Below, in pieces: positions 11,212-62,921 of a stretch of 64,000 bases of DNA. The notes under the pieces were generated by a model. That model was not told where the DNA came from. It saw only the letters and a program-made list of their open reading frames with translations, and did no database searches. Position 1 is the first letter of the stretch; each line of letters begins with the position of its first letter. Where the stretch lies: the IMG/VR virus record IMGVR_UViG_3300026521_000003, positions 225,881 through 289,880 of that record. The stretch is one strand, 5' to 3'. The position numbers and the translations under genes are program-made.

Positions 11212-11793
11212 TTGATGCATATAATATTAACAGATCATGTAAAAAATAGAAGAAAGAAAGGTAAGATCCCACCGCAAAGATTAATAGACTTTGCAACATA
11301 TCTTATAAAAGAACACGATTTAAAAAATAAAGAAGATGGCCGATATAAGTTCCGTAGGAAATCAACATCAGCGATTATTTCTAAGAAAAAAGAAAAATTC
11401 ACATTTATCACCTTTTTTGGTGGTACAGGATGGTTGATTGATTCTGATGATTTTTCCGGATTTAATTGCAAAAAACAAACGGCTGAACGAGTTAAACTTT
11501 CCATAAAAAGAAGTAAAGAGAAGAATAAAAATAAAATTATAAAAGAGATTAAACCATTACAAAACCTTAATGCTGAAATAAAAGATAAACTGAAAAGAGA
11601 CACTTTCAAAATTGATAAGTTGCGGGGCACTACAAAAGTAATTCTTAAAGCTATGTTTGGTAATAATCCTGAATTTTTATTTTTATCTAAATTCAAATCA
11701 TACAATTTAGTTTCAATTTTAAGAAGAGATGGTGGAATTATAAAAACGATTCACAAAAATAAACTTATAGAAATAGGAGTACTAGATGGATAG
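11212..11793 (+). CDS. Basic hypothetical protein
   Basis: 193 aa Lys/Arg-rich; AAGGA SD; start TTG 11212 or ATG 11215. Confidence 0.75.
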   Translation: MMHIILTDHVKNRRKKGKIPPQRLIDFATYLIKEHDLKNKEDGRYKFRRKSTSAIISKKKEKFTFITFFGGTGWLIDSDDFSGFNCKKQTAERVKLSIKRSKEKNKNKIIKEIKPLQNLNAEIKDKLKRDTFKIDKLRGTTKVILKAMFGNNPEFLFLSKFKSYNLVSILRRDGGIIKTIHKNKLIEIGVLDG

Positions 11794-12295
11794 TAATGGT
11801 TTTATAAAGATGATAGGTAAAATGCAAAATATGTGGCAACCTACATATATAGATGAAGAATATGTCAAGGTTTATAAAGATATTTGGTTTGTTGATTCTA
11901 GTTATCCTTTTGAAATAACCAGAGATTATGAAATGGTTTTAAAAAATGAAGATGAAATTTTATCTCAAATTGGTTTATTACCAAATGCTCAAAAAATGGT
12001 ACAAATGATGATGAATTCAACGTACGGTAGTTACGGAGTACCATCGTCAAGATTATATGGAAACCCTTCTCATTATTATGCTCGAACGATGTCTACCAAT
12101 AATTTTTTTAAAGAGTACAAATATGAAGAAGCAGCTAAAGTAGCACAAAATGAAAAATTGATTGCTCACTATAATCATAAAATTAAAAAAGCACCAAAGA
12201 AGAAAGAACAAGTTGAACGTCTTACAAAAATTATTGAAATGCTCGAACAAGAAAACGAAGATTTTATCACAGAATATCCAGAAAGGTTTATTTAA
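11786..12295 (+). CDS. Hypothetical protein with C-terminal PExxx tag
   Basis: Ends EYPERFI*; internal QKMVQMMMNSTYGSYG. Confidence 0.8.
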   Translation: MDSNGFIKMIGKMQNMWQPTYIDEEYVKVYKDIWFVDSSYPFEITRDYEMVLKNEDEILSQIGLLPNAQKMVQMMMNSTYGSYGVPSSRLYGNPSHYYARTMSTNNFFKEYKYEEAAKVAQNEKLIAHYNHKIKKAPKKKEQVERLTKIIEMLEQENEDFITEYPERFI

Positions 12296-24545: not shown

Positions 24546-25571
24546 ATGAAGATTTATGATGAATTAATTTATGATGATATTAGTATTTATTTAACCTATG
24601 AGCCTTATGAACATATATATCGTCGTGCTAGAAAAAGATTAAAACAATATTTTTCTGAAGAAATGTCAGCTGAATATTTTAATGAATTAATATATGCAGA
24701 TTATATTGAAGTTCAATCAGATAAAAAAATATCTGAAGCTAAACTTAATAATTTTAAATCATTTATGATTGCTTATTTCTTTGATAATAAAAATATGACG
24801 TCTAAAACTTATTATAAATCATTTGAATATATAAAGACTATGGAAGATCCATTAGAACGATTTGATGATCTTTTAACTAGTTCATTTTGTACAGATGAAG
24901 TTTTCTTATATTGTTTAGATAATGAATATATGGGTAATGATGAAGCTACACCTAGAAACATTCCATATAATAACTTTAAAGATAAAACGATAACAGAATT
25001 TTTAAAAGCAATAGATTGGTCGTGGTTTCATAAAGCTCCGCAATACGTAACAGCTTTATTAGATCAAAGAAAATTGACACAAATTCAATATGAATTGATA
25101 TTTAATCAATTTAGTGACTATACAGATATAGTATTTCTTATTGTAGAAAAAGGTGGACGTATTCCCGATGATAAATTTATTGAGTTACTGGGTAAGTATG
25201 ATACATTTGATATTAGTTATGCTAAAGTTGGAAAGGCTATTAAAGCTAAAATTTTAGAAAATTATGATTTTATAAGAAAGTCAGAATACCTTTCAGTTAT
25301 CATGGACTTTTTAACTATGGATGCAAAAGATTTTGAAAGAGCTCAAATTTATGATGCAATATTGCGCTATAAGCTTTCTAATAATTATCTTCATAGTGAA
25401 TTTCAAAGCGACCTTATAAGACGTATAGCTTTTGATACAAATGCTATAGATATTTTAGCAGAGAAAGCAGATTTTTCTAAATATGAACCATCAACACTTA
25501 TGCTAATTTATGAACTAAATAAAAATGAATTTTTCTTACCATCAGAAATTAAAGAAATTTTTATATTTTAA
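24546..25571 (+). CDS. DIFIF-tagged protein
   Basis: Ends IYELNKNEFFLPSEIKEIFIF*. Confidence 0.88.
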   Translation: MKIYDELIYDDISIYLTYEPYEHIYRRARKRLKQYFSEEMSAEYFNELIYADYIEVQSDKKISEAKLNNFKSFMIAYFFDNKNMTSKTYYKSFEYIKTMEDPLERFDDLLTSSFCTDEVFLYCLDNEYMGNDEATPRNIPYNNFKDKTITEFLKAIDWSWFHKAPQYVTALLDQRKLTQIQYELIFNQFSDYTDIVFLIVEKGGRIPDDKFIELLGKYDTFDISYAKVGKAIKAKILENYDFIRKSEYLSVIMDFLTMDAKDFERAQIYDAILRYKLSNNYLHSEFQSDLIRRIAFDTNAIDILAEKADFSKYEPSTLMLIYELNKNEFFLPSEIKEIFIF

Positions 25572-25572
25572 A

Positions 25573-25580
25573 AATAAATA
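25573..25580 (+). promoter_or_regulatory. T4-type late promoter (AATAAATA)
   Basis: AATAAATAAAGGAAAAATAGGATTTTAT-ATG(25601). Confidence 0.55.
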
Positions 25581-25600
25581 AAGGAAAAATAGGATTTTAT

Positions 25601-26386
25601 ATGACTAGTGAAGAACGACAAGAGAAATTTGCTGAAGAAAATTACGCAGGATTAGATGAAACGGGACAAGCCATGCTTGATAAACTAGAAATTATAAAAG
25701 AATATTGGAATATCTACGCTTCAGAAAAAAATAGAGAATCAGAAAAGGCAGAAAAAGCATATCGACAAATGGAAGAGGTTGGTAAAACCTTAGAAAATGA
25801 TTATACCATTTTAAGTATAAAACTGTCAAATGTAGTAGGTCATGCTTTGAATTCAAGTTCAACTAAAATGATACGTAAAGTTATAAAGTTTTTAGATAAA
25901 CATTCTCTTAATGATAAAATGATTCATTATGGGTTAATGAAAATAGCATCCGCAAGAACTAGTGACGGATCACTTATGGAAATGGCGATGACTGTTGCTG
26001 CAAGAAAGGATGATGTTAAATTTGCATCTGAGCTAATGTCTTTCATTGAAAAAAATAAAGGACGAGAAAATATCTGGGAATTTCCAGGAATACCTTGGGA
26101 TTTAAGAAATGCTGGTGATATGGTTAATTTTACTCGAACTATTAGTAAAGAGCGTATTGCATTGGATGCTTTAGTTAGTGGGTCAAAACATATGTATCAA
26201 TTTTTAGTTGGTAGTGAAGGCTTAAATAAAGATACTATTGTTAATTATATAAAACAGCCATATAGTGCGTTTACTATAAAAGAAGCAAGAAATGTTATTG
26301 CTCTTGAACCGTGGACAGTTGAGAAGTTTTTAGAATATGCTCCAGATAGAGTTCCACCTGAAGTTTCAGATATATTTATATTTTAA
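25601..26386 (+). CDS. DIFIF-tagged protein
   Basis: Ends PDRVPPEVSDIFIF*. Confidence 0.88.
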   Translation: MTSEERQEKFAEENYAGLDETGQAMLDKLEIIKEYWNIYASEKNRESEKAEKAYRQMEEVGKTLENDYTILSIKLSNVVGHALNSSSTKMIRKVIKFLDKHSLNDKMIHYGLMKIASARTSDGSLMEMAMTVAARKDDVKFASELMSFIEKNKGRENIWEFPGIPWDLRNAGDMVNFTRTISKERIALDALVSGSKHMYQFLVGSEGLNKDTIVNYIKQPYSAFTIKEARNVIALEPWTVEKFLEYAPDRVPPEVSDIFIF

Positions 26387-26397
26387 GGATTACGGAT

Positions 26398-27198
26398 ATG
26401 AATATTAGACAAGCTATGAAGATTGAAGCCTCAGGACAAAGAGACGTTAAATTAACTAAAGCAGCAGAACTTATAAAAAATGGTGACCGTAATATTATTG
26501 AAAAGTCATTAAATAATTTAAAATTGAATGATTGGATTGGACTAGCATTAAATCCGAATTTGACGGGTGATGACATTGAATTGATGTATAAACTTTTAAA
26601 AGAAGATTATAATTTAGAACGTGAAAAAAATATTCCCAATTCAACAAAAACAAGAAATGCAGGAACTCGAGCTAAAATTCGTAATCTTCTTGCTGTACAC
26701 CCAAATATAAAATCTGAAACGATTGATAAAATCCTTAAAGGTGCAAGATTATCAATTCCAACGGTTTTGAATAATCCAAAAATTACTAGTACTCAAATAG
26801 ATAATTTTTTTAATACACAAGTATTATTACAACCTGAAAAAAATATGGGGTCGTATAGTTTTGTAGGATTAGATAAATTAATGCAAACATCACAGATAAC
26901 GAAATCATTAGTTCAAAAGTGGTTTGATACTTTGAAAGAATATGCCGATTGGACATATTCTGATAACCAATGGTATTCAGTTATTAAAGCATTTTTAGAA
27001 TTTGATGATTGTCCAGAAGAAATTATAAACCTAGCTGCTTCAGCACCACTTAAATCGGATAATTTTTGGTCTAATACACTTAGGAAAATGGCGGTGAATC
27101 ACAAAAATGCATCAAATGATACGATGGTACAAGCTTATAAAATTACTGAAGATGAGCAATTTTTACCAGATGATGTAAAAGATATTTTTGTCTTTTAA
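26398..27198 (+). CDS. DIFIF-tagged LRV/HEAT-like protein
   Basis: LALNPNL, LAVHPNI, VLNNPKI, NHKNASND repeats; ends AYKITEDEQFLPDDVKDIFVF*. Confidence 0.88.
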   Translation: MNIRQAMKIEASGQRDVKLTKAAELIKNGDRNIIEKSLNNLKLNDWIGLALNPNLTGDDIELMYKLLKEDYNLEREKNIPNSTKTRNAGTRAKIRNLLAVHPNIKSETIDKILKGARLSIPTVLNNPKITSTQIDNFFNTQVLLQPEKNMGSYSFVGLDKLMQTSQITKSLVQKWFDTLKEYADWTYSDNQWYSVIKAFLEFDDCPEEIINLAASAPLKSDNFWSNTLRKMAVNHKNASNDTMVQAYKITEDEQFLPDDVKDIFVF

Positions 27199-39814: not shown

Positions 39815-39990
39815 GTATTTATGATATAATAGTGTGAACTACCCAACCGCTAAAGACGATTGGGCTTCTAAGGGAGTGCCGAGAGGCACTCCAATCATCG
39901 AACTTCAGAATTAACTGACATTCTCGATACAAAGATTCTGATTGATCTGGTCAATCAAGGTTATCTGTTCCAGAGACCATTTTTGATAAT
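39815..39990 (-). ncRNA. Predicted TnpB omegaRNA/reRNA (scaffold in the element right end, guide from flanking phage DNA)
   Basis: Strong hairpin GGAGTGCC-GAGA-GGCACTCC (39873-39892) plus right-end hairpin; position inferred from known TnpB biology; 5' end not determinable. Confidence 0.45.
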
Positions 39991-41221
39991 CTAAAAGATT
40001 ATCACTAGCATTCAAGTCTGCATGAGTAGTGTATCCACAGTTTTCACAATTAAAATCGCTTTGCGATTTTCTATTGTTCTTACTGATATGACCACATTTG
40101 AAGCATCTCTGACTGCTGAAAGCAGGATTTAATTCTCTAATCAATTTGTTCTTTTGTTCTTGTTTGTATTTGATTTTTTGTATCAACGAACCCCAACTGA
40201 CATCGGAAATCAGACGATTGAGTCGATTTGATTTCGATTCTTTCATCTTTTTGATTTCCAATTTTTCGATTGTGATTCTATCATATTGATTAGTCAATTG
40301 ATGACTCAATTTGTGAAAAAAATCCTCTTTTTTATTTTTGATTTTCTTGTACATTCGATTTGATTTCTTTTGGAGTTTCTTCGTATTTTTGGAAAAGTTC
40401 TTTTCTTTGTATCTTTTACTTAACTTCCGTTGGAGTTTCAAAAAGTTCTTTGAATATTTACTTTTTGAAAAATCCTCCAATTTAATCAATCTTCGATTTC
40501 CATTCGAATCTGAAATAGCTATATTTTCTACATTCAAATCAAGAGCACATTCTGTTCCTGTTTTTGGATATTGATTTTTGTCATTAATGATCAAATTAGC
40601 AATAAAATAATAGTTTCCATCTGACTCTCTTTTTACAATACCACCAGTAAATTTAGATTCCAAAGGAATTTCTCGATGGAATTTAGTTCTGATTTTCTTT
40701 TTGAAGATCTTTAATTTCCGTTCATCCCAAGAAGTTGCTTGATTACGAATGATGATTGATTGTTCGATGTTCTTACTTGATTTGAATTTAGGAAAACCTC
40801 CGGTTTTCCTGTGGAATCGGGAGAATGTATCATCTAATTTTCTTAGTTCATCCTGAACTACACCGGAATTGTATTTAATTCCTCGTTCTTTAAGGTGTTC
40901 TTTTGTAAGAGAATAAATATCTTTGAACTTTAAGTATTTCCTATCTGCCTCTGGCAGAGAAGAATTGGCAGAAAGGTCTTTGATTTTTAAACTCAAAGCA
41001 AAGTTCCAGGCTTGATTTGCAGTAAAGAAATAATGATTAAGGAAATCGGATTGTTCATTATTTGGTCGTAATCTGAATTTGTAATTGCGATTTAATTTCA
41101 ACTCAATCCTCCTTAAACTCTATATCCATATACTTATTTTACAATAAATTAATGTAAAATGTCAAATAATTGCTGATTCATCCCAATGGCTAAAGACCAT
41201 TGGGTTTTCTCAGCGACGTGT
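39834..41221 (-). mobile_element. IS200/IS605-family element carrying only tnpB (non-autonomous, IS1341-like)
   Basis: Related subterminal hairpins CCCAA.CG-CTAAAGA-CG.TTGGG (39842-39864) and CCCAATGG-CTAAAGA-CCATTGGG (41182-41204); minus-strand right end ...GGGTAGTTCAC; exact left boundary is +/- a few nt. Confidence 0.8.
39911..41101 (-). CDS. tnpB: RNA-guided endonuclease TnpB
   Basis: N-terminal YKFRLRPNNEQ HTH, GFPKFKS, RuvC-I ALDLN, RuvC-II ITIEKL, zinc finger CFKC/CENC, RuvC-III HADLNAS; GGAG SD. Confidence 0.93.
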   Translation of the reverse strand: MKLNRNYKFRLRPNNEQSDFLNHYFFTANQAWNFALSLKIKDLSANSSLPEADRKYLKFKDIYSLTKEHLKERGIKYNSGVVQDELRKLDDTFSRFHRKTGGFPKFKSSKNIEQSIIIRNQATSWDERKLKIFKKKIRTKFHREIPLESKFTGGIVKRESDGNYYFIANLIINDKNQYPKTGTECALDLNVENIAISDSNGNRRLIKLEDFSKSKYSKNFLKLQRKLSKRYKEKNFSKNTKKLQKKSNRMYKKIKNKKEDFFHKLSHQLTNQYDRITIEKLEIKKMKESKSNRLNRLISDVSWGSLIQKIKYKQEQKNKLIRELNPAFSSQRCFKCGHISKNNRKSQSDFNCENCGYTTHADLNASDNLLDYQKWSLEQITLIDQINQNLCIENVS

Positions 41222-43748: not shown

Positions 43749-44450
43749 GTGATTATGATACCAAATAATATTGCACGAATACTTAATCTAGATGATGTTG
43801 AAGCGTTTAAAAAAGAGTGGGATAATCTCAAAGATGCTATCTTTTCTATACGAGGTTCACGTACAAATATTCTACATGAAGCGTGTTCACGGGAAGCAGA
43901 ACAAATTACTATTTTTATACTTCGACAGAATCATATAGATATTAATGCTACAACAAATTTTAATAAAACTCCTCTCATGTTATTAATGATAGAATTTAGT
44001 AAGGCTGTTGAAGAAATATTAGAAGAATTATTTAAATATCCAAATTTAGATTGTGATATTGTTGATAATAATGGTGAAACAGCGTTAATGAAAGGGTTAG
44101 ATAGTGGTATTGCAGAAAGATACAATTTGCTATGTTTAGAAAGAATGAAAAATCTTAATTTGAAAAATTCGAGTGGTGAGACTATATTAGATATTTGTCT
44201 TAGACATCATGAAATGTATCGATTACATTCCACCTTAGTTTATGAATTGATTGAAAGAGATGCTTATGTCTCTGATGATAATTTATTATCAATAATGAGA
44301 TTTATTAAAGATAATTTAAATGTAAGCATAACTTGGAAACTAATCCAAACAAAAGATAGATTGAAAAATAAAGTTTATGAAATAGCTGTAAAAGATGATA
44401 CATTTGTTAATTTTTTACCAGATGATGTAAAAGATATGTTTTTATTTTAA
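43749..44450 (+). CDS. DIFIF-tagged ankyrin-repeat protein
   Basis: TNILHEACSRE, KTPLMLLM, NGETALMKGL, SGETILDICL; ends VNFLPDDVKDMFLF*. Confidence 0.88.
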   Translation: MIMIPNNIARILNLDDVEAFKKEWDNLKDAIFSIRGSRTNILHEACSREAEQITIFILRQNHIDINATTNFNKTPLMLLMIEFSKAVEEILEELFKYPNLDCDIVDNNGETALMKGLDSGIAERYNLLCLERMKNLNLKNSSGETILDICLRHHEMYRLHSTLVYELIERDAYVSDDNLLSIMRFIKDNLNVSITWKLIQTKDRLKNKVYEIAVKDDTFVNFLPDDVKDMFLF

Positions 44451-45234: not shown

Positions 45235-46566
45235 ATGCGATTAAGTCAATTAATAAAAAAAATAGATGAATTAAATTTAGAATATCAATTATTGGATGAT
45301 CCCAATTTAATTATTAATGTTTGGACACCATATAATGATCGAGGCATAAAACTAGAAGACGGAAAATATTATTCAAATGATACTTTAACTTCAGATGATA
45401 TAACTTCAATCCGAGGTAAATATTTAGAATTAGCACAACTTGCATTTGATAATGATTTAAAAATTAAAAATATTAACTACATAGAATTTAATTTGATAGC
45501 TAATATGCAGATAGAATTAGGTCGTTATTTAACAACTGACTCTATTAAGAATAATGATATTGAGTTGGAACCGACTGAAGCTCATGGATTAGATATTAAA
45601 GTTGCAGATTTATCATATGATGGATTACATCCTCAGAAAATTTTTAATACTAAATTAAGAAAACATGAAAAAGAAAAAGTTTTAAATAATATTTTAGATT
45701 TATTGAGTTATCATAATGATTATGGTAGAGCGATAATTTTATTAAATTTGGTTGAATATAGTAGTTTCATTGAACCCCTTAAAGTTGCTTTAGATGAACA
45801 GTATATAGATATTTCTTTTATGATAGAAGAAACACATAAAAGAGATGTTGTTTATTATGAAGATTTCAAAAAGCTATTTGCTACTTTGTCAACTTATAAA
45901 TCAACATACCCCATAGACCTATCTTATAACAGAGGTTATCTTTCAGATTCTGCTGTTGAAAGTCCTAAAACAATGAAGCAAATTTGTGAGAATTGGGAAT
46001 TTACTAATGAAACTGCTCATAGAGTTTTAACTTTTTTAATTCAAAACGAACAAACAAAAGCACTAGGTATTTTTTTAAAAAATTATCAACCGTTTGAAAT
46101 AACGGATTATTTAGATATTATTGAACAGGGGTTATTAACTATTGTTGAAAGTAGAATTTTTAAATTATTCCTAGATGATTGGGTTGATCTTAGTAAATTT
46201 AAGGTCGAAATTTTAAATGACTTAGATACGTTTACTATAAGATTGTATGATGAGCCTATAAAATTATTAGTAGAGGGTTTACTTAATATAGGTGTTGAGC
46301 CAAACTATTTATTCAAAAAATTATTAGATAGTTATGCCAATTCAAATTTATATAATCCTTTTGCATCTGGAAAAAAAGCTATGAAACTTTTTATAAATTT
46401 AGATGTGGATTTTACTCATAGAGATGGATATGTTTTGAATTTTTTTATTGATAATCAAAAATTGATTGATAAGATTATTAAAGATCCAAAAGTAGTAGAA
46501 GTGTTAGTAGCTAGTAATAATTTTACGTTTTTACCAGAAGAAATTAAATCTATATTTGTGTTTTGA
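45235..46566 (+). CDS. DIFIF-tagged protein (443 aa)
   Basis: Starts MRLSQLIKKIDE; ends FTFLPEEIKSIFVF*. Confidence 0.88.
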   Translation: MRLSQLIKKIDELNLEYQLLDDPNLIINVWTPYNDRGIKLEDGKYYSNDTLTSDDITSIRGKYLELAQLAFDNDLKIKNINYIEFNLIANMQIELGRYLTTDSIKNNDIELEPTEAHGLDIKVADLSYDGLHPQKIFNTKLRKHEKEKVLNNILDLLSYHNDYGRAIILLNLVEYSSFIEPLKVALDEQYIDISFMIEETHKRDVVYYEDFKKLFATLSTYKSTYPIDLSYNRGYLSDSAVESPKTMKQICENWEFTNETAHRVLTFLIQNEQTKALGIFLKNYQPFEITDYLDIIEQGLLTIVESRIFKLFLDDWVDLSKFKVEILNDLDTFTIRLYDEPIKLLVEGLLNIGVEPNYLFKKLLDSYANSNLYNPFASGKKAMKLFINLDVDFTHRDGYVLNFFIDNQKLIDKIIKDPKVVEVLVASNNFTFLPEEIKSIFVF

Positions 46567-49313: not shown

Positions 49314-49922
49314 ATGGCTGATTATATTAGAAAGGCAGACCAAGAAATACCATTAACTCAAGAACAAGTTATGGAGATGGCTAGGTTAATGAAACGACCA
49401 ACAGGTTTAATGAGATTTATCCATTATATCGATATTGATACGGCTGATGGTCCTATAAATTTTGGTAAAGTTATTAAAGATTTTCAGTTTGATATGTTAA
49501 AAACCTTTCAAAATTATGATCGATCAATTATTTTGGCATCTCGTCAGATGTCGAAGACTACACTTGCAGCTGTATATCTTCTTTACGAGGCTACCTTTCC
49601 AAAATCAAAAGGGGATATTCTTATAGTTGCACACAAACAAGGTCACTCTATGGAAGTTCTAAAAAGATTAAGAGATATGTATTTCTCTATGCCAATGTGG
49701 ATGAAAGCTGGAATGGTGAAAAATAACGAAACATCTATAACTTTTGATAATGGTATGAGAGTTATTGCTGAAGCTACGACTGCTAATGCTGCTAGGGGTA
49801 AATCTCTAAAAATTGTATATTGTGTAGATGGAGAAACAAAGATAACAGTTAGAAATAAAATAACAAAAGAAATAAGAGAAATTGATATTCAGGATTTATA
49901 TTTAAATGATGAATACAAGTAA
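49314..49922 (+). CDS. terL: Large terminase (T4 gp17-like) fragment 1: ATPase N-part fused to split-intein IntN-1
   Basis: Q motif (KDFQ), Walker A ILASRQMSKTT, NETSITFDNGMRV, ARGKSLKIVY, then CVDGETKITV... (intein block A) at 49821, 33 aa to stop. Confidence 0.9.
   Translation: MADYIRKADQEIPLTQEQVMEMARLMKRPTGLMRFIHYIDIDTADGPINFGKVIKDFQFDMLKTFQNYDRSIILASRQMSKTTLAAVYLLYEATFPKSKGDILIVAHKQGHSMEVLKRLRDMYFSMPMWMKAGMVKNNETSITFDNGMRVIAEATTANAARGKSLKIVYCVDGETKITVRNKITKEIREIDIQDLYLNDEYK
49821..49922 (+). mobile_element. Split intein N-fragment 1 (33 aa)
   Basis: CVDGETKITVRNKITKEIREIDIQDLY resembles short IntN fragments of atypically split terminase inteins (C-x-x-G-(D/E)-T...I-x-D-L-Y). Confidence 0.85.
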
Positions 49923-49957: not shown

Positions 49958-52093
49958 ATGATTGAATTGATAGATTATAAGTCAAATCCTGAAAAAATTA
50001 GAGTAGAACTCTTAAATAAAATCAATAAAAAAATTTCTATACAGACTAAAATATTTTCAAATGATTTAAAAAATCAAATTTGTATTGATTATGATGAAAT
50101 TGAATTTAAAAAAGCTTTAGCTAGATTCATCCACAATGATAAAATTAAACAATGTCCATACAATGAATGTGGATTAGAAAGAAAATTTTTAAGTGTTGCT
50201 AATGGTTTTGCTAAGGGGTGTGGGAAAAATCATTCTACTAAACTCACCAATTTAGAAAAGTACGGTGTTGAAAATCCTCAGCAGAATAAAGAGATTAAAA
50301 ATAAAACTAAAGCAACAAATTTAAAAAAATATGGTGTAGATAATCCTGCTAAATCAGAAATCATTAAAGAAAAAACTAAAGAAACATATTTAGCTAAAAC
50401 GGGCTATAATTCACCTTTAGAAAATCCAGACGTTGTTGAGAAAATTAAAAAAACTAATTTAGAAAAGTACGGTGTTGAAAATCCACTAGAATCTACTAAG
50501 GTAAGAGAAAAATACAAGAGTACTATGCTTGAGAGATATGGTGATTCTATACCTATGCGATCAGAATCTATAAAAGATAAGTACAAGGAAAATATGCAAA
50601 AGAATTTTGGTGTAGATCATTACAACCAAACATCAGAATTTAAGAATGATAAAAAAAGAAAATATTATTATAGAAAATTAATGTCTGATAGCTATCCTGT
50701 AAAACCATTATTTACCGTAGATGATTATATCAATTTAAGTGATAGTTTTGATAAGCTTAAATGGCAATGCAAAACATGTAATAGTGTATTTGATGCACAT
50801 AATCATAATAAAGTTATACCTCGATGTTTAACATGCTATCCCTTAATATTTGATGGTGTATCATTATTAGAAAATGAAGTAGTAACTTTTATTCAGAGTT
50901 TCCAAACTGATATTTTGATGAATGATAGGATATTGATTGCTCCGTATGAACTAGATATTTTAATACCCTCAAAAAATCTAGCTATTGAATTTAATGGTTT
51001 GTACTGGCATTCAGAATTAAATGGTAAAGATAAAAATTATCATATTAAAAAAACAATTAAATGTACAGAAAAAGGTGTGCAACTACTTCATATCTTTGAA
51101 GATGAATGGGTTTTTAAAAAGGAAATAGTAAAATCAATAATTAAAGCTAAATTGGGTTTATTCACTAATAGAATATATGCTAGAAAATGTATTATTGAGG
51201 AAATCGATAATAACACTAAGGATATTTTTTTAGAAGAAAATCATATTCAGGGAACTGATATTTCAAAAGTCAAACTAGGGTTATTTTATAATAATGAGTT
51301 AATCCAAGTTATGACATTTGGTCATAGTAGATATAATAAGAATTTTCAATATGAGATGCATAGATTTGCATCAAAACAAGGTTATCAGATTATAGGTGGT
51401 GCAAGTAAATTATGGAAATATTTTATTAGAAATTATAATCCTGAATCGGTAATTACTTATGCTGATAGAAGATATTCTAATGGGGTCACTTATGAAAAAA
51501 TAGGTTTTAGGAAAGCAAGAGAATCAAACCCTAATTTTTTTATAATTAATAAAGGTGTAAGAGAGTCACGATTGAATTGGCAGAAGCATAAACAGAAAGA
51601 TAAATTAGAAAAATTCAATCCTGAACTAACAGCATGGGAAAATATGCAGATTAATGGGTATGATAGAATTTGGGATTGTGGTAATTATGTTTTTGAATGG
51701 AAAAATCAAAAGGTGATTACAAAAATGAATAAAGAAGAGAAAAAATATTTTGATTTAGTTAGAATAAATTTAACTGATGATTTGATACCTTCACATTATA
51801 AAGATGGGAAACTAGATAATCCTATGTATGGCCATTGTCATCATGCTTCACTAGCATTATATGATTTATTAGGTGGAAAAGAAGCGGGTTATAAATTAAG
51901 AAAAGCAATAGACGATGACAATATCATCCATTATTGGTTAGAAACACAAGATGGTATTATAATAGATCCAACAGTAGAACAATATACTGATTTAGGAAGA
52001 AAGCCACCGTATGATAAGCAAGTTAAGAAAGGGATTAGTTATAGAAGAACAAATTCATCGAAGCTATTAGTCTCTAAAATAAAACAGTTATAA
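49958..52093 (+). CDS. Free-standing Vsr/Hef-like (PD-(D/E)xK) homing endonuclease with 23-aa repeats and a C-terminal transglutaminase/papain-like domain
   Basis: TNLEKYGVENP repeats; CKTC/CLTC zinc motif; YELDILIPSKNLAIEFNGLYWHS and LLHIFEDEW; IYARKC...IWDCGNYVFEW; tail NPMYGHCHHAS...HYWL...IIDPT. Confidence 0.8.
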   Translation: MIELIDYKSNPEKIRVELLNKINKKISIQTKIFSNDLKNQICIDYDEIEFKKALARFIHNDKIKQCPYNECGLERKFLSVANGFAKGCGKNHSTKLTNLEKYGVENPQQNKEIKNKTKATNLKKYGVDNPAKSEIIKEKTKETYLAKTGYNSPLENPDVVEKIKKTNLEKYGVENPLESTKVREKYKSTMLERYGDSIPMRSESIKDKYKENMQKNFGVDHYNQTSEFKNDKKRKYYYRKLMSDSYPVKPLFTVDDYINLSDSFDKLKWQCKTCNSVFDAHNHNKVIPRCLTCYPLIFDGVSLLENEVVTFIQSFQTDILMNDRILIAPYELDILIPSKNLAIEFNGLYWHSELNGKDKNYHIKKTIKCTEKGVQLLHIFEDEWVFKKEIVKSIIKAKLGLFTNRIYARKCIIEEIDNNTKDIFLEENHIQGTDISKVKLGLFYNNELIQVMTFGHSRYNKNFQYEMHRFASKQGYQIIGGASKLWKYFIRNYNPESVITYADRRYSNGVTYEKIGFRKARESNPNFFIINKGVRESRLNWQKHKQKDKLEKFNPELTAWENMQINGYDRIWDCGNYVFEWKNQKVITKMNKEEKKYFDLVRINLTDDLIPSHYKDGKLDNPMYGHCHHASLALYDLLGGKEAGYKLRKAIDDDNIIHYWLETQDGIIIDPTVEQYTDLGRKPPYDKQVKKGISYRRTNSSKLLVSKIKQL
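50246..50650 (+). repeat. About 6 tandem 23-aa repeats (TNLEKYGVENP-type) in the homing endonuclease
   Basis: Near-identical DNA copies a(c)(c/t)aatttagaaaagtacggtgttgaaaatcc at 50246 and 50453. Confidence 0.85.
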
Positions 52094-52137: not shown

Positions 52138-53445
52138 ATGAGAATTAAAGATCTTATAAATGAAGTTAATATCGATGATTATGAAGATTTAGCACATTAT
52201 AAAAGTCCATTCGTAGATAATAAGGGAGATTATAGCATTCCATTTCAATGGCACCGCAAAAAAGCAACTCCAGATGAACACGAGATGACAAGACTTAGAA
52301 ACTTAGCTAAACTTGCTTTTAATAATTCATTTAAAAGTAGATTAAATAAACTTAAAAAGGCATTAAAAGAGAAAAATTTCTTAAAAATGCAAGAACAATT
52401 AGAGTACTTATACACATATAAATATGATTTAACGGAGTTGATGATTGATGGAAAATTAACTAGTGAATATAAAAAAGATTTTGATTATATGAAAATGATA
52501 ATCGATAAAAAAATTAATAAAATCAATAAAATACTTGAGTATAATCAAAAATTATTCAATGATGTATTTGGTAAAAAAAGTTATAAGAGAACTGCTAATT
52601 TTTATTCTAAAACGGATACATTTACTATAACAACATATAAAAAGCAGACAGAAAGATTCCATGAAATACTCAAACGTTTAAAACGTATTCCTCATGAGTT
52701 AGCTATATTGGATAAAAAATTTAATTCGGTTGATAATAAAGAAAAATTAGAATTATTAAAAAAAGAAAAAGAAAATCTTGTTAAATGGATTGAAAAATAT
52801 AATGATATACTTAAAGCTATGGTTGTTAGAATTGAAGTTCAAAAGCATAGCAAAGGTAAAACAAAAATATTTAATTATGATGATCCTTATACGTTTTTTA
52901 ATGCAATTGATGAAGAAATGCCATTATTTTATGATTCTGAAAGAAAAAAGAAAATACCATTAAAAAATTTGGATTTAGTTGATGAAGTATTTCATGAATT
53001 AAGATCAATAAAAACTATAGCATTAGGTAAGAAAAGCTTAAAAAGCTTAATCCCTCTTTCAAAAAGACCAAGTAGTTTAGATAGTTTAGATCCTAAAAAA
53101 CGAAAAACACGTACGATGAAAATTAAAGATTTAACGTATGAAAAACAGAAAAAAGAAATGGATTCCAAAAAAGAATCAGAGAAAGATTTAGACGGATTAT
53201 CTAAAATATTCGATAAAGGTACTAAGATTATAGATAAGAAATTAAAAGTAGGTATAGAAAGTTTGGGTGATGGTAAGATAAAATTAATTGATAAGGATGG
53301 TAAGCAACTTAAACCATTTGATCTAAATATTCAATATATTAAATGGCTTACAGAGGATGAAAAAATGTCAGGAATTATCGATATTAAAAACACTACACAA
53401 AAAATAGCATCAATTATAGATGATCTAGAAATTATTAAAAAATAA
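52138..53445 (+). CDS. Basic hypothetical protein with leader MRIKDLINE, putative virion-associated
   Basis: 435 aa Lys-rich; CTS-like leader; own late promoter. Confidence 0.8.
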   Translation: MRIKDLINEVNIDDYEDLAHYKSPFVDNKGDYSIPFQWHRKKATPDEHEMTRLRNLAKLAFNNSFKSRLNKLKKALKEKNFLKMQEQLEYLYTYKYDLTELMIDGKLTSEYKKDFDYMKMIIDKKINKINKILEYNQKLFNDVFGKKSYKRTANFYSKTDTFTITTYKKQTERFHEILKRLKRIPHELAILDKKFNSVDNKEKLELLKKEKENLVKWIEKYNDILKAMVVRIEVQKHSKGKTKIFNYDDPYTFFNAIDEEMPLFYDSERKKKIPLKNLDLVDEVFHELRSIKTIALGKKSLKSLIPLSKRPSSLDSLDPKKRKTRTMKIKDLTYEKQKKEMDSKKESEKDLDGLSKIFDKGTKIIDKKLKVGIESLGDGKIKLIDKDGKQLKPFDLNIQYIKWLTEDEKMSGIIDIKNTTQKIASIIDDLEIIKK

Positions 53446-53504: not shown

Positions 53505-53840
53505 ATGGGGTTTTTAATGAAGGAAATTTTAGAGTGGGAAGTACTTACTCCAGATGGATGGAGTGACTTTTCAGGTATTATTGAATTAGAGAAGAAAGTA
53601 TTAACAGTTAAATTTCAATCTGGTAAAGAATTGACTGGAAGTGAGACTCATAGACTTTTATTAAAAAAGAATGAATTTATTGAATTGCAGTATTTAATGC
53701 CTAACGATACAATCATTTCAGAAGATGGAACAGAAATAGTTGAAACGATTGAAGAGGGTTCGATACAAAAAGTTTACGATCTGGTTGAAGTTGAATCTGA
53801 ATATCATAGATACTTCACTAATGGACTTATTTCACACAAC
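53505..53840 (+). mobile_element. Split intein C-fragment 1 (about 108-112 aa)
   Basis: Ends in canonical His-Asn followed by Cys(+1); contains blocks B, F, G. Confidence 0.88.
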
Positions 53841-54290
53841 TGCGATGAAATGGCATTTATACCAAATAGGATTCAAGATGAATTTATGGCTGGTACTGCT
53901 CCTGCTCTTTCAGCAACTCGAGGTAAAATGATTGTTACTTCTACACCAAATGGTTCAAGAGATTTATTTGCAAAGATTTGGCAAAACTCTGGTATGGAAT
54001 GGGATAAGAAGGAAATGACATATCTTAGAAAAAACAAACCAAAAAATGAGTTTGAACCTCTTTTTGTACCTTATTGGATAGACCCAACTAAAAATACCCC
54101 TGAATGGATTGAACGAGAAAAGAAAACATTGGATGATCCAGTTAAATTTAAAGTTGAGTTTGAATGTCTTGACGAAGAAACTAAGGTTGATGTTTATGAT
54201 GAGATAACTAATGAATATAAAACTTTAACCCTGAAAGAAATAAAAGATATTTTAGACAAGGATTTACTAAGTAAAAATCTATTAGTTTAA
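53505..54290 (+). CDS. terL: Large terminase fragment 2: IntC-1 + ATPase C-part (Walker B) + IntN-2
   Basis: WEVLTPDGWSDFSGI...SETH (block B)...VYDLVEV (block F)...YFTNGLISHN|CDEMAF (C at 53841); GKMIVTSTPNG (motif C); KVEFE|CLDEETKV (C at 54165). Start may be ATG 53517. Confidence 0.9.
   Translation: MGFLMKEILEWEVLTPDGWSDFSGIIELEKKVLTVKFQSGKELTGSETHRLLLKKNEFIELQYLMPNDTIISEDGTEIVETIEEGSIQKVYDLVEVESEYHRYFTNGLISHNCDEMAFIPNRIQDEFMAGTAPALSATRGKMIVTSTPNGSRDLFAKIWQNSGMEWDKKEMTYLRKNKPKNEFEPLFVPYWIDPTKNTPEWIEREKKTLDDPVKFKVEFECLDEETKVDVYDEITNEYKTLTLKEIKDILDKDLLSKNLLV
54165..54290 (+). mobile_element. Split intein N-fragment 2 (41 aa)
   Basis: CLDEETKVDVYDEITNEYKTLTLKEI follows EFE, then stop; partner IntC not in window. 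Confidence 0.8.
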
Positions 54291-54316: not shown

Positions 54317-55180
54317 ATGAAACTTAGTACACACCCTCATTTAATTAATAAACCTACTTTAGAAAAAACAGATAAGCATCTTATAATGATGCAATCTGTT
54401 AAACACTTTGATAGACATAATATTGAAACATTAGAAGAATTATATGAAATAGTTTCTAGAAACGTAGTTTATGCTCCTATTTATTGGAAAAGAAATTATA
54501 GAAAAATTGATAATGCAATACTTTCTAAGATTGATTTATTGATATATGATTCTGATGAAGGTGATACTGCTGATGAAATTATAGACATGCTTGGTGAAGT
54601 TGAAACAATGGTGTTACAAACATCAGGCTGGACAGAAGAAAAAGAGAAATATCGTATTTTTATACCGTTAGAAAAACCAATAACCTTTGAAAGTCCTGAA
54701 GAATATACATATTTTTATAGATGGTTGGGTGATATTATTGGTTTGAATTATGATACTAGTACTACCGAATGTGGGAGAGGTTATATAGGATTAGCTGGAA
54801 AGAGAGGTTTTAAAATAGAAGGTGAGCGTCTGAATCCTTTGCCAGCTTGGAAAAAAGAAAAATACAATTATAAGAAAAAAGCAAAAAGAGAACGTCTTAG
54901 AAACTATATAAGATCTATAACCCAACGAGAAATGTTAGAAGATAGTGGTTATACAGTTCCATCACCCCACGATTTAAGATTTAATGATAGAAAATTTAAT
55001 GAATTGGCATTAGAATGTGGGGCTGGTAAAAACTATAAAGCTGTTTTTAAAATTTTAGGATATTGTAAATTTCGTGGTTTAACAGCCTCCGAAGCCGCAC
55101 AGGCTGTAATGTTGTTAAATTTAGGTAATGAATATAATAATGAAAAAGAACTTATTAGAAGATATGAAAAATTGGGATAA
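54317..55180 (+). CDS. AEP-superfamily primase/prim-pol-like protein
   Basis: LLIYDSD (DxD), LQTSGWTEEKEKYRIFIPL (like YTTxSH...YRxxIPL), YD...GRG; C-terminal PriCT-like helical domain. Confidence 0.5.
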   Translation: MKLSTHPHLINKPTLEKTDKHLIMMQSVKHFDRHNIETLEELYEIVSRNVVYAPIYWKRNYRKIDNAILSKIDLLIYDSDEGDTADEIIDMLGEVETMVLQTSGWTEEKEKYRIFIPLEKPITFESPEEYTYFYRWLGDIIGLNYDTSTTECGRGYIGLAGKRGFKIEGERLNPLPAWKKEKYNYKKKAKRERLRNYIRSITQREMLEDSGYTVPSPHDLRFNDRKFNELALECGAGKNYKAVFKILGYCKFRGLTASEAAQAVMLLNLGNEYNNEKELIRRYEKLG

Positions 55181-59086: not shown

Positions 59087-59299
59087 ATGGATGATACCCA
59101 ATTCAATAAACTTATGAGTATATTTGAAAATGAATACCCTGATATTTATTTAAAATTGATTAATTATCCTCGTTCTGTACTTGAAGGAACGTTTATAGAT
59201 TTATTAACTAGTAAAATTAATATATCTGATAATGAGCAGGTCCAGAATTTTTTTAAATTTCGTAGTGCATTAACACCGTACTTAGATAATTTTGTATAA
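59087..59299 (+). CDS. Hypothetical protein
   Basis: Track ORF 59039..59299; ATG 59087 avoids overlap. Confidence 0.65.
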   Translation: MDDTQFNKLMSIFENEYPDIYLKLINYPRSVLEGTFIDLLTSKINISDNEQVQNFFKFRSALTPYLDNFV

Positions 59300-59321
59300 A
59301 AAATAAAAATAAAGTGAAACA

Positions 59322-60200
59322 ATGGAATTTATTTCTTTAAGTCATGTGCATAATAATGTATTAAAACAATATGGGAAGCATAAGCATTTAAAATCAAAAA
59401 TAAACGATTATTTTAATAGTTTTGTAGATCAACACCAAGATTTAAAATATTTGTGGTATGATGGTAAAGCTTATGTACCATCACAGTTTGGTTTTCAACT
59501 TAAAAAAGAGATTGAGAAGAAAATTAATAAATCTATAAGACCAATTCATGCCAAAATTTTTAATAAAACTGATGAATTATTATTAAAAGATAATATTTAT
59601 ATTAAGCAAAAATTAGCTGAAAAAAAGCAACAAGTTAAAGATTTAGCTAGTGCTAAAAGAGAATCAAATATTTTAAAGTTAAAAGATTGTGTGAGAAAGA
59701 TAAAATCTGGAGAAATACAATTTATCGGTTCGTTTGATTTAGAATTTTGGGAACGAGATATGAATCGTATTTTAGAATTCGGTTGGTCTATAATGGATTA
59801 TAATGGCAGTACCACAACTACTCATATTGTAGTCCAAGATAATCTCAATTATGAAAATGGAATTTTTTCTAAAAATAATAGGTATGCAAGAAAAGATTCA
59901 AAAACAAAACCACTTAAACTAGCTATAAAAGAATTTAAAGAAAAATTTATTAATAAAGTTGATCTATTTATTGGACATGGTTTAACAAATGACTTTAAGG
60001 TCTTAAAAGCTAACGGAGTAAATTTAGATATTGAATATTTAGATACTGCAGAAATCGGTGCAGCATTAATGGGTGAAGATGATAATGTTAGTATTGAAAG
60101 ACTATTAAAATTTTTAAATATAGAGAGTTCTAACTTACATAATGCAGCAAATGATGCAGAATACGTCCTAGAAGCATTTAAAGTTATGGGGGAGATATAA
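59322..60200 (+). CDS. DEDDh-family 3'-5' exonuclease
   Basis: FDLEFWE (ExoI), FIGHGLTNDFKVL (ExoII), LDTA, LHNAANDA (ExoIII). Confidence 0.85.
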   Translation: MEFISLSHVHNNVLKQYGKHKHLKSKINDYFNSFVDQHQDLKYLWYDGKAYVPSQFGFQLKKEIEKKINKSIRPIHAKIFNKTDELLLKDNIYIKQKLAEKKQQVKDLASAKRESNILKLKDCVRKIKSGEIQFIGSFDLEFWERDMNRILEFGWSIMDYNGSTTTTHIVVQDNLNYENGIFSKNNRYARKDSKTKPLKLAIKEFKEKFINKVDLFIGHGLTNDFKVLKANGVNLDIEYLDTAEIGAALMGEDDNVSIERLLKFLNIESSNLHNAANDAEYVLEAFKVMGEI

Positions 60201-60670
60201 TGGAAATTACAACTTTAGAACAATTGCAAGTTATTGCTAATGACACACCTTTATTTGTTATACCTCAAATTTCATTTCGTGCAACACCTAATAATTATTG
60301 GACATCAATATCTGCAACATTTAAACGTTATCATCCTGTACAAAGAATAGTAAAAATAGAGCCTGAAGATATTTATGATATAAGTTATGTTAATGAACCA
60401 GGTGAAATTGAAAGAGCATATCACCTAGATCCTGAAGCATTAGCAGAGTATTTTATAGAAAATCGATATGGTGATGATCATGCTATCGGTGACCCTATTT
60501 TAGTATTTACTGAAGAACAAGAAGCATTTAAACGTTTTTATATAGATTTTAAAAAATCCTTAGAAAGTGAAAATAGATTGCATAAAACCTTAGAAAGAAT
60601 GAATGAAGATTTAGAAAATTCTTCATTTTTAAAAGAAGATATGAATAAATACCCTGAGAGATGGGTTTAA
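60200..60670 (+). CDS. Hypothetical protein with C-terminal PExxx tag
   Basis: Ends KYPERWV*. Confidence 0.8.
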   Translation: MEITTLEQLQVIANDTPLFVIPQISFRATPNNYWTSISATFKRYHPVQRIVKIEPEDIYDISYVNEPGEIERAYHLDPEALAEYFIENRYGDDHAIGDPILVFTEEQEAFKRFYIDFKKSLESENRLHKTLERMNEDLENSSFLKEDMNKYPERWV

Positions 60671-60680
60671 AGGAGATTAA

Positions 60681-61361
60681 ATGGATATTAGAGATTATGC
60701 TCAATATTCAATTTCAGATTTCAGGGTAAAATACATACCTGAAAAATTAGAAATTAATTATGAATTAGTAGATGATAAAACAATAAAGCTTAAGGTACCA
60801 AAAGATGCTTTTAATGATGTTGTTATGAATTTGGAGAAAGATAGTTTGGATTTTGAAGTTATACCTTCAGAACGAAAATTAGATATGAAATATCCTAGAC
60901 ATAACGGTAAAAAACAATTAAAAACACAACCATTTAAAATGGTAATTTATTTTGTAGAAAATGCTGCATTGAAAACGGTAGAAAATTTAAAAAATAATGA
61001 AGATATTCATATTAAAAATTGGGGTGAATTTTTTGAAATTATTGATCCAGAATATAGAAATTTATTTAAAAAAATCATAGATAATATTATTATTGCTTTG
61101 CATAAAGATGAATATAATAAAGTAATTTCAAAAAAAACTTATTGGTTAGATCCGAACGACGGGTTATATGAAAAGAAAGAAAAATTTGTAAATGGTGAGT
61201 GGAGAATAAGTTATCAACCAGTTACTAGTAATTTATATCAGGTTTTTAGAATGTTTTTTAAATTTTTTGATCAAGTACCTTTAGAGGAACTAGCAGACTT
61301 TAACAAGTTTAAGGAAATCATCGCCAATACAAAATACAAAATACATTTATATAATAAATAA
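60681..61361 (+). CDS. Hypothetical protein
   Basis: 226 aa; AAGGAG SD. Confidence 0.8.
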   Translation: MDIRDYAQYSISDFRVKYIPEKLEINYELVDDKTIKLKVPKDAFNDVVMNLEKDSLDFEVIPSERKLDMKYPRHNGKKQLKTQPFKMVIYFVENAALKTVENLKNNEDIHIKNWGEFFEIIDPEYRNLFKKIIDNIIIALHKDEYNKVISKKTYWLDPNDGLYEKKEKFVNGEWRISYQPVTSNLYQVFRMFFKFFDQVPLEELADFNKFKEIIANTKYKIHLYNK

Positions 61362-61385
61362 TAGAAAAACAAAGGGTATGAGTTA

Positions 61386-62921
61386 ATGGCATATAATGAA
61401 AAAGATTACAAATACTATGCAAGTAATCCTAAAAAAATTTCTGCTGATTTAGATGAAGAATTATTACTTGCATTAGTTGATATTAATTCTTCATGGCTTG
61501 GGTATATGAAGCCATATGATTTAGATTTTGTTAAAAAAGTTATCGAGGTGGATCCAACAACGTTTGAATTTGTTGATAGAAATATACTAACTATATCATT
61601 TTTAGAAGAAATTATTAGCCAATACCCTTTTTTAATTCAGTATGTTTATGAACCAAATGAAGCATTAATAAAACTAGCTTTATCAACAGATCTAAATACA
61701 ATTCAATATTTTACAAAGTTATCAGACGACTTAAAAATTTGGGTTCTAAATCAAAATGGTATGTTATTAAAGTACATACCACCATCAGAACAAACAGAAA
61801 CAATAGTAGAGGTTGCTATTAAACAAAATATTGAAGCATATGAAAATGCAGCTATTAAAAATTTATATTTGGATAAAATTGTTTTGAATATAGATGCAAG
61901 AAGAGTTGATTTGATTTCTGATTATCATCCAGAGTTAATAGAATATATTGTAGAATATGAACCAAAAATGATAAGTAAATTTATAGATGATCCAGTTCTT
62001 ACTGATGAAATATTATATAGGACAATAGAAAAAAATCCTCAAGTTTTTAGATTTATAAAAAATCCTAGTTATGAATTAATAGAATTTGCTACAAAATTAG
62101 ATATAACTTTATTAGATTATTTACCGTATGATAAAAAGTTGATAGAGTCATTAATACCTACAAATGGACTCGCTTTAGAGTATTTAAGAAAAAAGGACTT
62201 GAGGAATATAAAAATTGCTGTAGAACAAAATATTTTAGCTTTAAAATTTATACCTTATCCTAGAGCATTTTTAATAGACTACGCCTTTAAGGTTGATGGT
62301 ATTGCACTTCAATTTATAGAGAATCCAACAGATGAACAATATTTAGATGCTGTTCAAAGAAATGGGTATGCTATTGAATTTGTTCCTTCTGATAAACAAA
62401 CAAAAACAATACAAACCTCAGCATTATCTTCAATAGGTACTAAAGCCATACCATTTATAACAGAGCCATATGATAATGATATTATTTTGGAGATAATTAC
62501 TCAGGAGCCAGGATATATATTTAAGATTGATGAACCAACAGACGAACAATTTATAACATCATTTACATTATCCGGTCAATTAATGTTATTTTATGACGGA
62601 TGGGAAGAAAAATTTAGTACCGAAGTTAAAGTAGCAGCACTAACTTCAGATGGTTCAATTTTAGAGTATTTTAAAACACTCACAAAAACTTATATTATGG
62701 CTGCTTTGGAATCATTTGCTCCAGCATTACAATGGGTAGAAAGACAAGATATTGAAATGGCTAAAGCGGCAATTGAAACTGATATTAGAGCTATATTCTT
62801 TGTTGATCCAACAATTATGGATGAGGAATTGTTAAATTTAGCATATGAGTTAGACCCAGATTTTTTCACTAGAACGGAAGGTGAATTAACATTTGAACAA
62901 TGGACAGAATTAATAAAGTAA
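61386..62921 (+). CDS. DUF4116-like tandem-repeat protein
   Basis: About 24-aa repeats such as VLNQNGMLLKYIP, AVQRNGYAIEFVP, AVEQNILALKFIP; AATAAATA at 61353. Confidence 0.75.
   Translation: MAYNEKDYKYYASNPKKISADLDEELLLALVDINSSWLGYMKPYDLDFVKKVIEVDPTTFEFVDRNILTISFLEEIISQYPFLIQYVYEPNEALIKLALSTDLNTIQYFTKLSDDLKIWVLNQNGMLLKYIPPSEQTETIVEVAIKQNIEAYENAAIKNLYLDKIVLNIDARRVDLISDYHPELIEYIVEYEPKMISKFIDDPVLTDEILYRTIEKNPQVFRFIKNPSYELIEFATKLDITLLDYLPYDKKLIESLIPTNGLALEYLRKKDLRNIKIAVEQNILALKFIPYPRAFLIDYAFKVDGIALQFIENPTDEQYLDAVQRNGYAIEFVPSDKQTKTIQTSALSSIGTKAIPFITEPYDNDIILEIITQEPGYIFKIDEPTDEQFITSFTLSGQLMLFYDGWEEKFSTEVKVAALTSDGSILEYFKTLTKTYIMAALESFAPALQWVERQDIEMAKAAIETDIRAIFFVDPTIMDEELLNLAYELDPDFFTRTEGELTFEQWTELIK

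Follow-up and report, generated by a model that had tools for sequence, protein, structure and literature searches.

A T4-type large terminase divided among three phage genes and most likely joined by two different atypical split inteins

The open reading frame (ORF) at positions 53505-54290 of the DNA analysed here most likely encodes the second of three pieces into which a jumbo phage has divided its T4-type large terminase (TerL), one gene for each; their products are most likely joined post-translationally by two different, non-cross-reacting atypical split inteins. The DNA (the window) is the last 64 kb, positions 225881-289880, of IMG/VR virus record IMGVR_UViG_3300026521_000003, a record of 289,880 bp with 27% GC that is rated 87% complete, and the best-matching sequencing run is a hydrothermal-vent metagenome. 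Each split intein has a short N-terminal half (IntN) and a long C-terminal half (IntC) on separate chains. Piece 1 ends in the IntN of intein 1 (IntN-1), piece 2 begins with its partner (IntC-1) and ends in the IntN of intein 2 (IntN-2), and piece 3, which lies outside the window, begins with IntC-2 (Table 1).

The 261-residue product of the middle ORF, encoded on the plus strand, falls into three parts, IntC-1, a terminase segment and IntN-2. Residues 1-112 close on the block F/G pattern VYDLVEV...LISHN and are followed directly by Cys113 (SHN/C); the extein that this cysteine opens starts CDEMAFIPN and includes the motif TSTPNG; and at the second junction, FE/CLDEETK, residue 221 begins CLDEETKVDVYD..., with 41 residues to the stop codon. 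This reading of the sequence confirms exactly the limits given in an earlier note on this DNA, namely residues 113-220 for the extein and 33 and 41 aa for the two IntN tags. Translation is likely to start at the second ATG, at 53517 (MKEILEWEV...), where the homologues begin, and IntC-1 would then probably be 108 aa long.

A profile built from 26 homologues of piece 2 matches the C-terminal half of the Cat intein (CatC, 6dsl_B) over profile positions 5-111 with an E value of 3.7e-16 (1.1e-6 for the single sequence), and the N-terminal half (CatN, 6dsl_A) over positions 215-247, the IntN-2 region, with an E value of 0.008. The middle of the same profile matches T4 gp17 around Walker B, at gp17 chain positions 253-301, and the extein matches PHROG terminase families. 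Searches of the PDB with single IntN peptides returned nothing meaningful, CatN being reached by the family profile only. N112, C113, D114, E115, C221 and the block B histidine, H49, are invariant in the 26 sequences, which range from 100% to 33% identity, and remain so in an alignment of 50; D92 of IntC-1 is, with H49 and N112, likewise invariant in the 26-sequence alignment. In an AlphaFold2 (AF2) model of piece 2 that drew on 50 homologues, the IntC-1 part is predicted with high confidence (pLDDT 86-96), and residues 1-111 match HINT-fold structures with Z scores of 13-15 (VidaL 14.7, gp41-1 14.1, Cat 13.6). In each case the match leaves the first 22-35 residues of the solved intein uncovered, which is the part that a short IntN would supply. 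The CatC and CatN matches, the HINT-fold model and the invariant residues thus bear out the earlier note's description of one polypeptide with IntC-1 at its N-terminus and IntN-2 at its C-terminus.

The remainder of the terminase is accounted for by the other two pieces. The piece 1 ORF (49314-49922) consists of an extein and the 33-residue IntN-1. The extein matches Pfam Terminase_6N (E 1.8e-5) and PHROG terminase families, and aligns with T4 gp17 up to ...AMIY, one residue short of the Walker B Asp-Glu. A BLAST search of every ORF in the genome with IntC-1 as query located piece 3, approximately 82 kb from piece 2 and on the opposite strand. Its 114-residue IntC-2 ends KSHN; the extein opens CQFLTFEKTLI... 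and contains a nuclease domain, which aligns with gp17 over approximately residues 352-566 (E 4e-26); the IntC-2 profile matches CatC at E 4.2e-17 (about 1e-6 for the single sequence). Alignment to the terminase profile phrog_2 gives positions 246-368 for piece 1 and 369-455 for piece 2, such that the two exteins abut exactly. The three exteins total 600 aa (169 + 108 + 323) in gp17 order and carry, also in that order, the T4-type large terminase motifs SRQMSKT, CDEMAF, TSTPNG, IDPSAGGED and GYHDDRVM, which gives them the set expected of this enzyme: Walker A, the Walker B Asp-Glu, the coupling motif and an RNase H-like nuclease domain. The solved gp17 chains among the piece 2 profile matches have 577-592 residues, and full-length gp17, at 610 aa, is about the same size as the combined exteins. 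No further TerL was detectable in the 290-kb record by Pfam and phrog_2 profile searches.

Both insertion sites can be placed on gp17. Intein 1 lies at approximately gp17 253/254, with its +1 cysteine directly before the catalytic Asp-Glu of Walker B, and intein 2 at approximately gp17 353/354, in the hinge between the ATPase and nuclease domains. The class-1 catalytic set is complete in each: C170 on piece 1 with H49, H111, N112 and C113 on piece 2 for intein 1, and C221 on piece 2 with H49, H113, N114 and C115 on piece 3 for intein 2. These positions are invariant or nearly so in four family alignments. Both IntCs carry the block B histidine (H49), the block F aspartate and SHN, and both inteins have the atypical split layout, with block A on the N-terminal piece and blocks B, F and G on the C-terminal one; judged on these sequence features, both belong to the atypical split class that includes AceL-TerL, GOS-TerL and Cat. 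In the mechanism we propose, IntN-1 would dock on IntC-1 and IntN-2 on IntC-2, each pair completing a HINT fold, and splicing by the standard Cys1/Asn/Cys+1 chemistry would yield a predicted TerL of about 600 aa.

Such a pathway requires that the two inteins be kept apart, and several lines of evidence bear on how this might be achieved. The first is descent. IntC sequences are 50-62% identical within an insertion-site class and 23-28% identical between classes; IntC-1 and IntC-2 of this phage share 24% identity, and IntN-1 and IntN-2 share 19%. On a maximum-likelihood tree the IntCs cluster by insertion site, with 5 label changes as against 25 when the labels are shuffled; a third class, found at the Walker A site in relatives, is monophyletic (100/96). 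No two inteins from one genome are sisters there, which rules out a recent duplication of one intein into the other. The IntN-1 class is conserved, with 39 homologues of mean identity 71%; IntN-1 itself has no match in the PDB, and its profile misses CatN even at E 10.

The second line of evidence is charge, measured for IntC over the nine residues before the TPxGW motif and for IntN over residues 5-16. In the Walker B-site class the IntC strand is net negative in 50 of 53 sequences and the IntN segment net positive in 37 of 39, whereas in the hinge-site class IntC is net positive in 80 of 81 and IntN net negative in 54 of 56. The phage studied here follows the pattern, with +3 for IntN-1 and -2 for IntC-1, and -3 for IntN-2 and +3 for IntC-2. 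Among the 49 middle pieces that could be scored, both halves are negative in 44 and complementary in none. Specificity may therefore arise from the divergence of the two lineages together with a reversed interface charge, positive IntN-1 with negative IntC-1 and negative IntN-2 with positive IntC-2. The same-sign halves on piece 2 would then repel each other and the extein would escape cyclisation, and a pairing of IntN-1 with IntC-2 that skipped the middle segment would likewise be disfavoured by charge.

Co-folding offers a third view of the same question. When four chains (the piece 1 tail, IntC-1, IntC-2 and the piece 2 tail) were modelled together, IntN-2 gave ipSAE values of 0.53, 0.59 and 0.53 and made confident contacts with IntC-2 only, at IntC-2 residues 5-13, 23-27, 43-50, 89-94, 104-108 and 112-115, the last of these including the H113-N114-C115 junction. 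All controls scored 0.00, including one in which IntC-1 and IntN-1 were retained and IntC-2 was replaced.

At the same time, a number of observations weigh against this interpretation. The co-folding tool itself returned a verdict of weak support, its result may reflect the model's memory of solved inteins, and its input consisted of our own alignments; moreover, IntC-1 was probably filled by its cognate IntN-1 in that run, so the intramolecular case of piece 2 is not isolated by it. In the AF2 monomer of piece 2, IntN-2 is modelled with moderate confidence (pLDDT 66-75) as a hairpin and helix that may be docked on IntC-1. The charge rule is weak in the third, Walker A-site class, where the halves are near neutral and 6 of 23 middle pieces that run from IntC-0 to IntN-1 are nominally complementary. 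Finally, a charge swap in one strand pair alone failed to make Npu DnaE orthogonal (10.1101/546465), and the charge pattern is thus suggestive, not sufficient.

One rival reading is that piece 2 reacts with itself, IntC-1 and IntN-2 cyclising or concatenating the 108-residue Walker B segment, whether as a sink for packaging or as a functional cyclic protein. The topology invites the idea, because the order IntC, target, IntN on one chain is the permuted layout of engineered backbone cyclisation, as in split-intein circular ligation of peptides and proteins (SICLOPPS). IntC-1 and IntN-2 also share a broad atypical intein family, and IntN-2, modelled with moderate confidence in the monomer, may be docked there. 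Cross-reaction within one class is real, since the IntN pieces of GOS-TerL and AceL-TerL are reported to be interchangeable (PMC11766414). IntC-1 and IntN-2, however, come from different site-specific lineages, both are net negative in 44 of the 49 scored homologues and complementary in none, and the co-fold placed IntN-2 on IntC-2, with the score falling to 0.00 once IntC-2 was removed. The extein, moreover, is an incomplete part of the ATPase fold, modelled on its own with pLDDT 41-74, and gives no sign of an independent role. Self-reaction would cost the only detectable terminase its Walker B segment, and yet the layout is kept across at least 50 lineages; a layout retained in the only detectable TerL of so many lineages would not persist if that segment were destroyed. 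We therefore consider self-reaction improbable. The earlier note had offered a self-circularising protein as one alternative and partial cross-reaction as a possible regulator of packaging; we find no evidence for either, and the halves on piece 2 are not a cognate pair. Its further contention, that the two inteins must not cross-react, fares better: lineage divergence, charge reversal, co-folding and conservation in at least 50 homologues agree, indirectly but consistently, that they probably do not.

Slightly less probable again is a terminase that works as a non-covalent complex of three chains, in which the intein halves no longer splice and serve as tight docking modules. Split intein halves do bind tightly ahead of any chemistry. 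Under selection for binding only, however, one would not expect Cys1, the block B histidine, the block F aspartate, the penultimate histidine, the terminal asparagine and the +1 cysteine all to be invariant, and approximately 150 intein residues would remain lodged at Walker B and at the domain hinge.

The divided terminase is widespread among relatives. Database searches returned 65 matches to piece 2, 90 to piece 3 and 84 to piece 1, from metagenomes and on contigs of up to 496 kb. More than 45 of the piece 2 matches are of equal length (approximately 257-275 aa) and 55-72% identical over 98% of the query, and at least 50 related middle pieces keep the IntC-extein-IntN layout with their catalytic residues intact. 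In most relatives piece 1 is split further, into a piece of about 114 aa that ends in a third IntN after the Walker A lysine and a 238-residue piece composed of IntC-0, extein and IntN-1. Indeed, a four-piece terminase with two different middle chains is commoner among the matches than a three-piece one. Viral contigs carry three collinear pieces (L004, L005), four adjacent pieces without endonuclease genes between them (L006, L007) or two pieces (L008, L014), and contiguous inteins occur at site 1 (L010) and site 2 (L011, P0059). In a related jumbo phage, represented by a 306-kb record (G001, the record of L003) that is 59-65% identical, the terminase lies in four pieces over approximately 60 kb and on both strands. 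In L004, the chain at 9932-10948 (+) continues past IntN-2 with a Cys-rich extension of about 100 aa before its stop, and piece 3 begins 4 nt later. L013 has a further full-length intein at a fourth site: the chain headed by IntC-1 at 9989-12094 (+) holds a large contiguous intein (...SPTLS/CVTYDT...GILGSN/TGGS...) just before TSTP, and its size suggests that it still carries an endonuclease domain.

Least probable of all is that the three ORFs are degenerating remains of a terminase gene broken by mobile elements, or artefacts of assembly, with a working enzyme elsewhere or absent. In favour of this, the record is a metagenome assembly rated 87% complete, piece 3 is distant and on the other strand, and the Pfam nuclease-domain model Terminase_6C (PF17289) found no match in the genome, piece 3 included. 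Against it, none of the three ORFs is interrupted, their motifs are conserved and their junctions exact, and the same piece boundaries are retained in homologues of 55-95% identity. The 306-kb record shows the same dispersed layout, and the Pfam and phrog_2 searches of the record analysed here found no other terminase match. Between 0.81 and 0.92 of sampled words from a 5.9-kb stretch around piece 2 are present in three further DNA runs, of which one is an epibiont metagenome, so that the stretch is not peculiar to one assembly.

Table 1. Terminase pieces, intein halves and adjoining genes, in window coordinates unless another record is named
Feature	Position	Strand	Length	Description
Terminase piece 1 extein	49314..49820	+	169 aa	N-terminal ATPase region; Walker A SRQMSKT; ends ...GKSLKIVY
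IntN-1	49821..49919	+	33 aa	CVDGETKITVRNK...DEYK; starts CVDGETK; short N-half of split intein 1, read from sequence as cognate to IntC-1
Free-standing homing endonuclease gene	49958..52093	+	711 aa	phrog_3339 'homing endonuclease' (E 8.7e-139); phrog_559 (E 1.9e-103)
ORF between homing endonuclease and piece 2	52138..53445	+	435 aa	no significant Pfam match, no PHROG match
IntC-1	53505..53840	+	112 aa from first ATG	C-terminal (long) half of intein 1; SETHR (block B), VYDLVEV (block F), ISHN (block G)
Terminase piece 2 extein	53841..54164	+	108 aa (residues 113-220)	+1 Cys, Walker B CDEMAF, TSTPNG, remaining ATPase domain to ...KVEFE
IntN-2	54165..54287	+	41 aa	CLDEETKVDVYDE...; short N-half of split intein 2; partner IntC-2 outside the window
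Terminase piece 3 (IntC-2, extein)	G000:C1:196327-197640 (= L002:6327-7640)	-		outside the window
Terminase pieces of the related 306-kb record (G001)	169361-169729; 185053-185298; 200204-201172; ~230007-230780	-; -; -; +		

The genes around the pieces point to how this arrangement may have come about. The homing endonuclease gene begins 35 nt after piece 1; its product also matches Pfam DUF7487 (E 8e-29) and, weakly, the Vsr-type REase_MTES_1575 family, and a homologous gene sits between pieces 1 and 2 in L004. In P0048, a close relative with 96% identity to piece 1, the exteins of pieces 1 and 2 are fused without intein 1 (...KIVYCDEMSF...); the Walker B site is therefore polymorphic, consistent with recent homing. 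Given the endonuclease that adjoins piece 1 and the fused exteins of P0048, the layout probably arose as intein and homing-endonuclease elements invaded hot spots in TerL time after time, with the gene then being split and its pieces dispersed. A promoter and terminator scan around the terminase pieces gave no more matches than in shuffled sequence, in DNA of 27% GC, and is uninformative on transcription units.

Several other split inteins are evident in the genome. Three more ORFs open with a short canonical IntC, at genome positions 225480-226097 (+, ending at window position 217), 25461-26630 (+) and 59247-60476 (-), with junctions THN/S, VHN/S and THN/S, and the sequences downstream resemble, respectively, those of a replicative helicase, a DNA polymerase of family B and a topoisomerase/GyrB. 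In the polymerase ORF, block G (NNILVHNS) has the same sequence as in the split PolB intein that has been reported from jumbo phage MIJ3 (PMC6892783). Directly after piece 2, a 287-residue ORF (window 54317-55180, +) matches the phage DNA primase family phrog_2135 over positions 456-637 of 713 only (E 9e-13), and could be one part of a further divided gene; no intein motif is apparent in its sequence.

Further features of the window concern its gene content more broadly. Downstream of piece 2, a block at 59322-62921 with genes for a DEDDh exonuclease, for products of about 150 and about 225 aa and for a DUF4116 protein some 510 aa long is syntenic with L026:8445-12024 and with L027; in those relatives it starts no more than about 2 kb from piece 2, whereas here approximately 5 kb of other genes intervene. 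Forty of the 425 genome ORFs of at least 90 aa end in the pattern [ILVMF]F[ILVMF]F, 39 of them in tandem in window 10876-57703, nearly all on the plus strand, and one at genome 24469-25425. These ORFs share a longer tail, (Y/F)LP.E(V/I)KDIF(I/V)F, and are diverse in their N-terminal parts; the product of 43749-44450 has ankyrin repeats and that of 45235-46566 has no Pfam match. Shared by so large an array of genes, the tail has the appearance of a tag or sorting signal at the C-terminus. The last residues of terminase piece 3 are ...DILPSVF. Within the tandem array lies a TnpB/Cas12f-like ORF of 396 aa (window 39911-41101, -) with matches to HTH_OrfB_IS605, OrfB_IS605 and the Cas12f1-like TNB domain.

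A broader reading suggests itself, which we offer tentatively and to which we would give slightly less than an even chance as a whole: that vent and marine jumbo phages carry naturally co-evolved, mutually orthogonal atypical split inteins. This phage would have two, and relatives with a four-piece terminase three (at the Walker A, Walker B and hinge sites), each with an IntN of some 30 aa; the inteins would choose their partners largely by a charge code and build an essential enzyme from scattered pieces. In that joint claim the code would take three forms (a positive IntN with a negative IntC, a negative IntN with a positive IntC, or two neutral halves), and the three or four pieces would be scattered over tens of kb and both strands. 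Known natural split inteins halve a protein, whereas here an essential motor enzyme is apparently made from three pieces, and from four in many relatives. Were this confirmed, these phages would offer the first natural example of multi-piece protein trans-splicing and a ready kit for one-pot ligation of three or four fragments. Multi-piece assembly would also imply that nature has overcome the cross-reactivity problem of engineered multi-fragment ligation. The family-wide charge reversal provides a concrete hypothesis for specificity that can be tested by mutation. Co-resident inteins with an IntN of about 30 aa would also be attractive for semisynthesis, since such short tags can be made as peptides, and labelling of a central segment becomes possible. 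In an evolutionary context, three nucleotide-binding or hinge hot spots of TerL emerge as recurrent targets of intein and homing-endonuclease elements, and the pieces can apparently drift apart in the genome without loss of function, a clear case of gene fragmentation driven by selfish elements that would be hard to reverse after scattering. The intein class and its short tags are known; what is new, within the literature searched, is the multi-piece, multi-intein layout of TerL and its wide occurrence in uncultured phages. That search found no natural protein with two or more split inteins, that is, no natural IntC-extein-IntN chain, and as the original AceL, GOS and Cat papers lay outside its reach, we regard the novelty as provisional.

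In placing this terminase among known systems, the atypical class itself is the natural starting point. Cat looks like the hinge-site class, that of intein 2, in that CatN is reached by the IntN-2 profile only, and the hinge-site extein of relatives starts CEFL.., as does the native AceL-TerL extein. The Walker B-site class of intein 1 is not described in the literature searched. VidaL (PDB 6VGV), the best structural match of the IntC-1 model, is only 24% identical to it; it is also the best sequence match (E 3.6e-7) of the IntC-0 class found at the Walker A site of relatives. GOS-TerL, AceL-TerL and Cat (PDB 6DSL) resemble the inteins described here in having a T4-type large terminase as host and cysteine at positions 1 and +1, and in being split right after block A, with an IntN of 25-37 aa and an IntC of 104-115 aa (PMC11766414; PMC2677866). 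The earlier note gave the lengths of its very short IntN tags correctly, but such tags are not a new property; they are the defining feature of a known and already engineered class, with 25 aa in AceL-TerL, 37 aa in GOS-TerL and 30 aa in Cat (PMC11766414). These inteins are described, however, as single pairs that halve TerL, whereas here two inteins, and in relatives three, occupy one gene, with the consequence that one chain bears the IntC of one intein and the IntN of another.

A second point of comparison is the 'fractured genes' of Dassa et al. (2009), in which a free-standing Vsr-like or GIY-YIG homing endonuclease lies between the halves of a split intein on the same strand (PMC2677866); the same study lists one gp17-like terminase with an unusually long IntC of 122 aa (PMC2677866). 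Fracture 1 mostly resembles that layout: in this phage, too, a split intein interrupts a housekeeping gene, and a homing endonuclease ORF comes after piece 1 with a spacer of 35 nt. Fractured genes, however, have one fracture per locus and two pieces, whereas here there are two fractures, and three in relatives. Fracture 1 departs from the layout in the extra 435-aa ORF before piece 2, and fracture 2 does not conform to it, having no adjacent endonuclease, IntN-2 being followed by the primase-like ORF and piece 3 lying some 82 kb away on the minus strand.

Two engineered designs complete the comparison. With SICLOPPS, piece 2 shares the chain order of IntC, target and IntN, but SICLOPPS uses the two halves of one intein, and it is the presence of both halves on one chain that makes a permuted intein self-cyclising; piece 2 instead carries halves of two inteins, the partners of which are on pieces 1 and 3. 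Engineered three-fragment ligation (10.1101/546465, PMC7090010, PMC12707363) is built like the terminase described here, with a middle fragment between the IntC of intein A and the IntN of intein B, and it shares the underlying logic, in that cross-reactivity has to be suppressed and charge patterns serve as a design lever. Those systems are laboratory designs that use mostly canonical split sites, whereas the arrangement in this phage is apparently natural, and its two intein pairs are of the atypical kind with a short IntN, as are all three pairs of the relatives that have a four-piece terminase.

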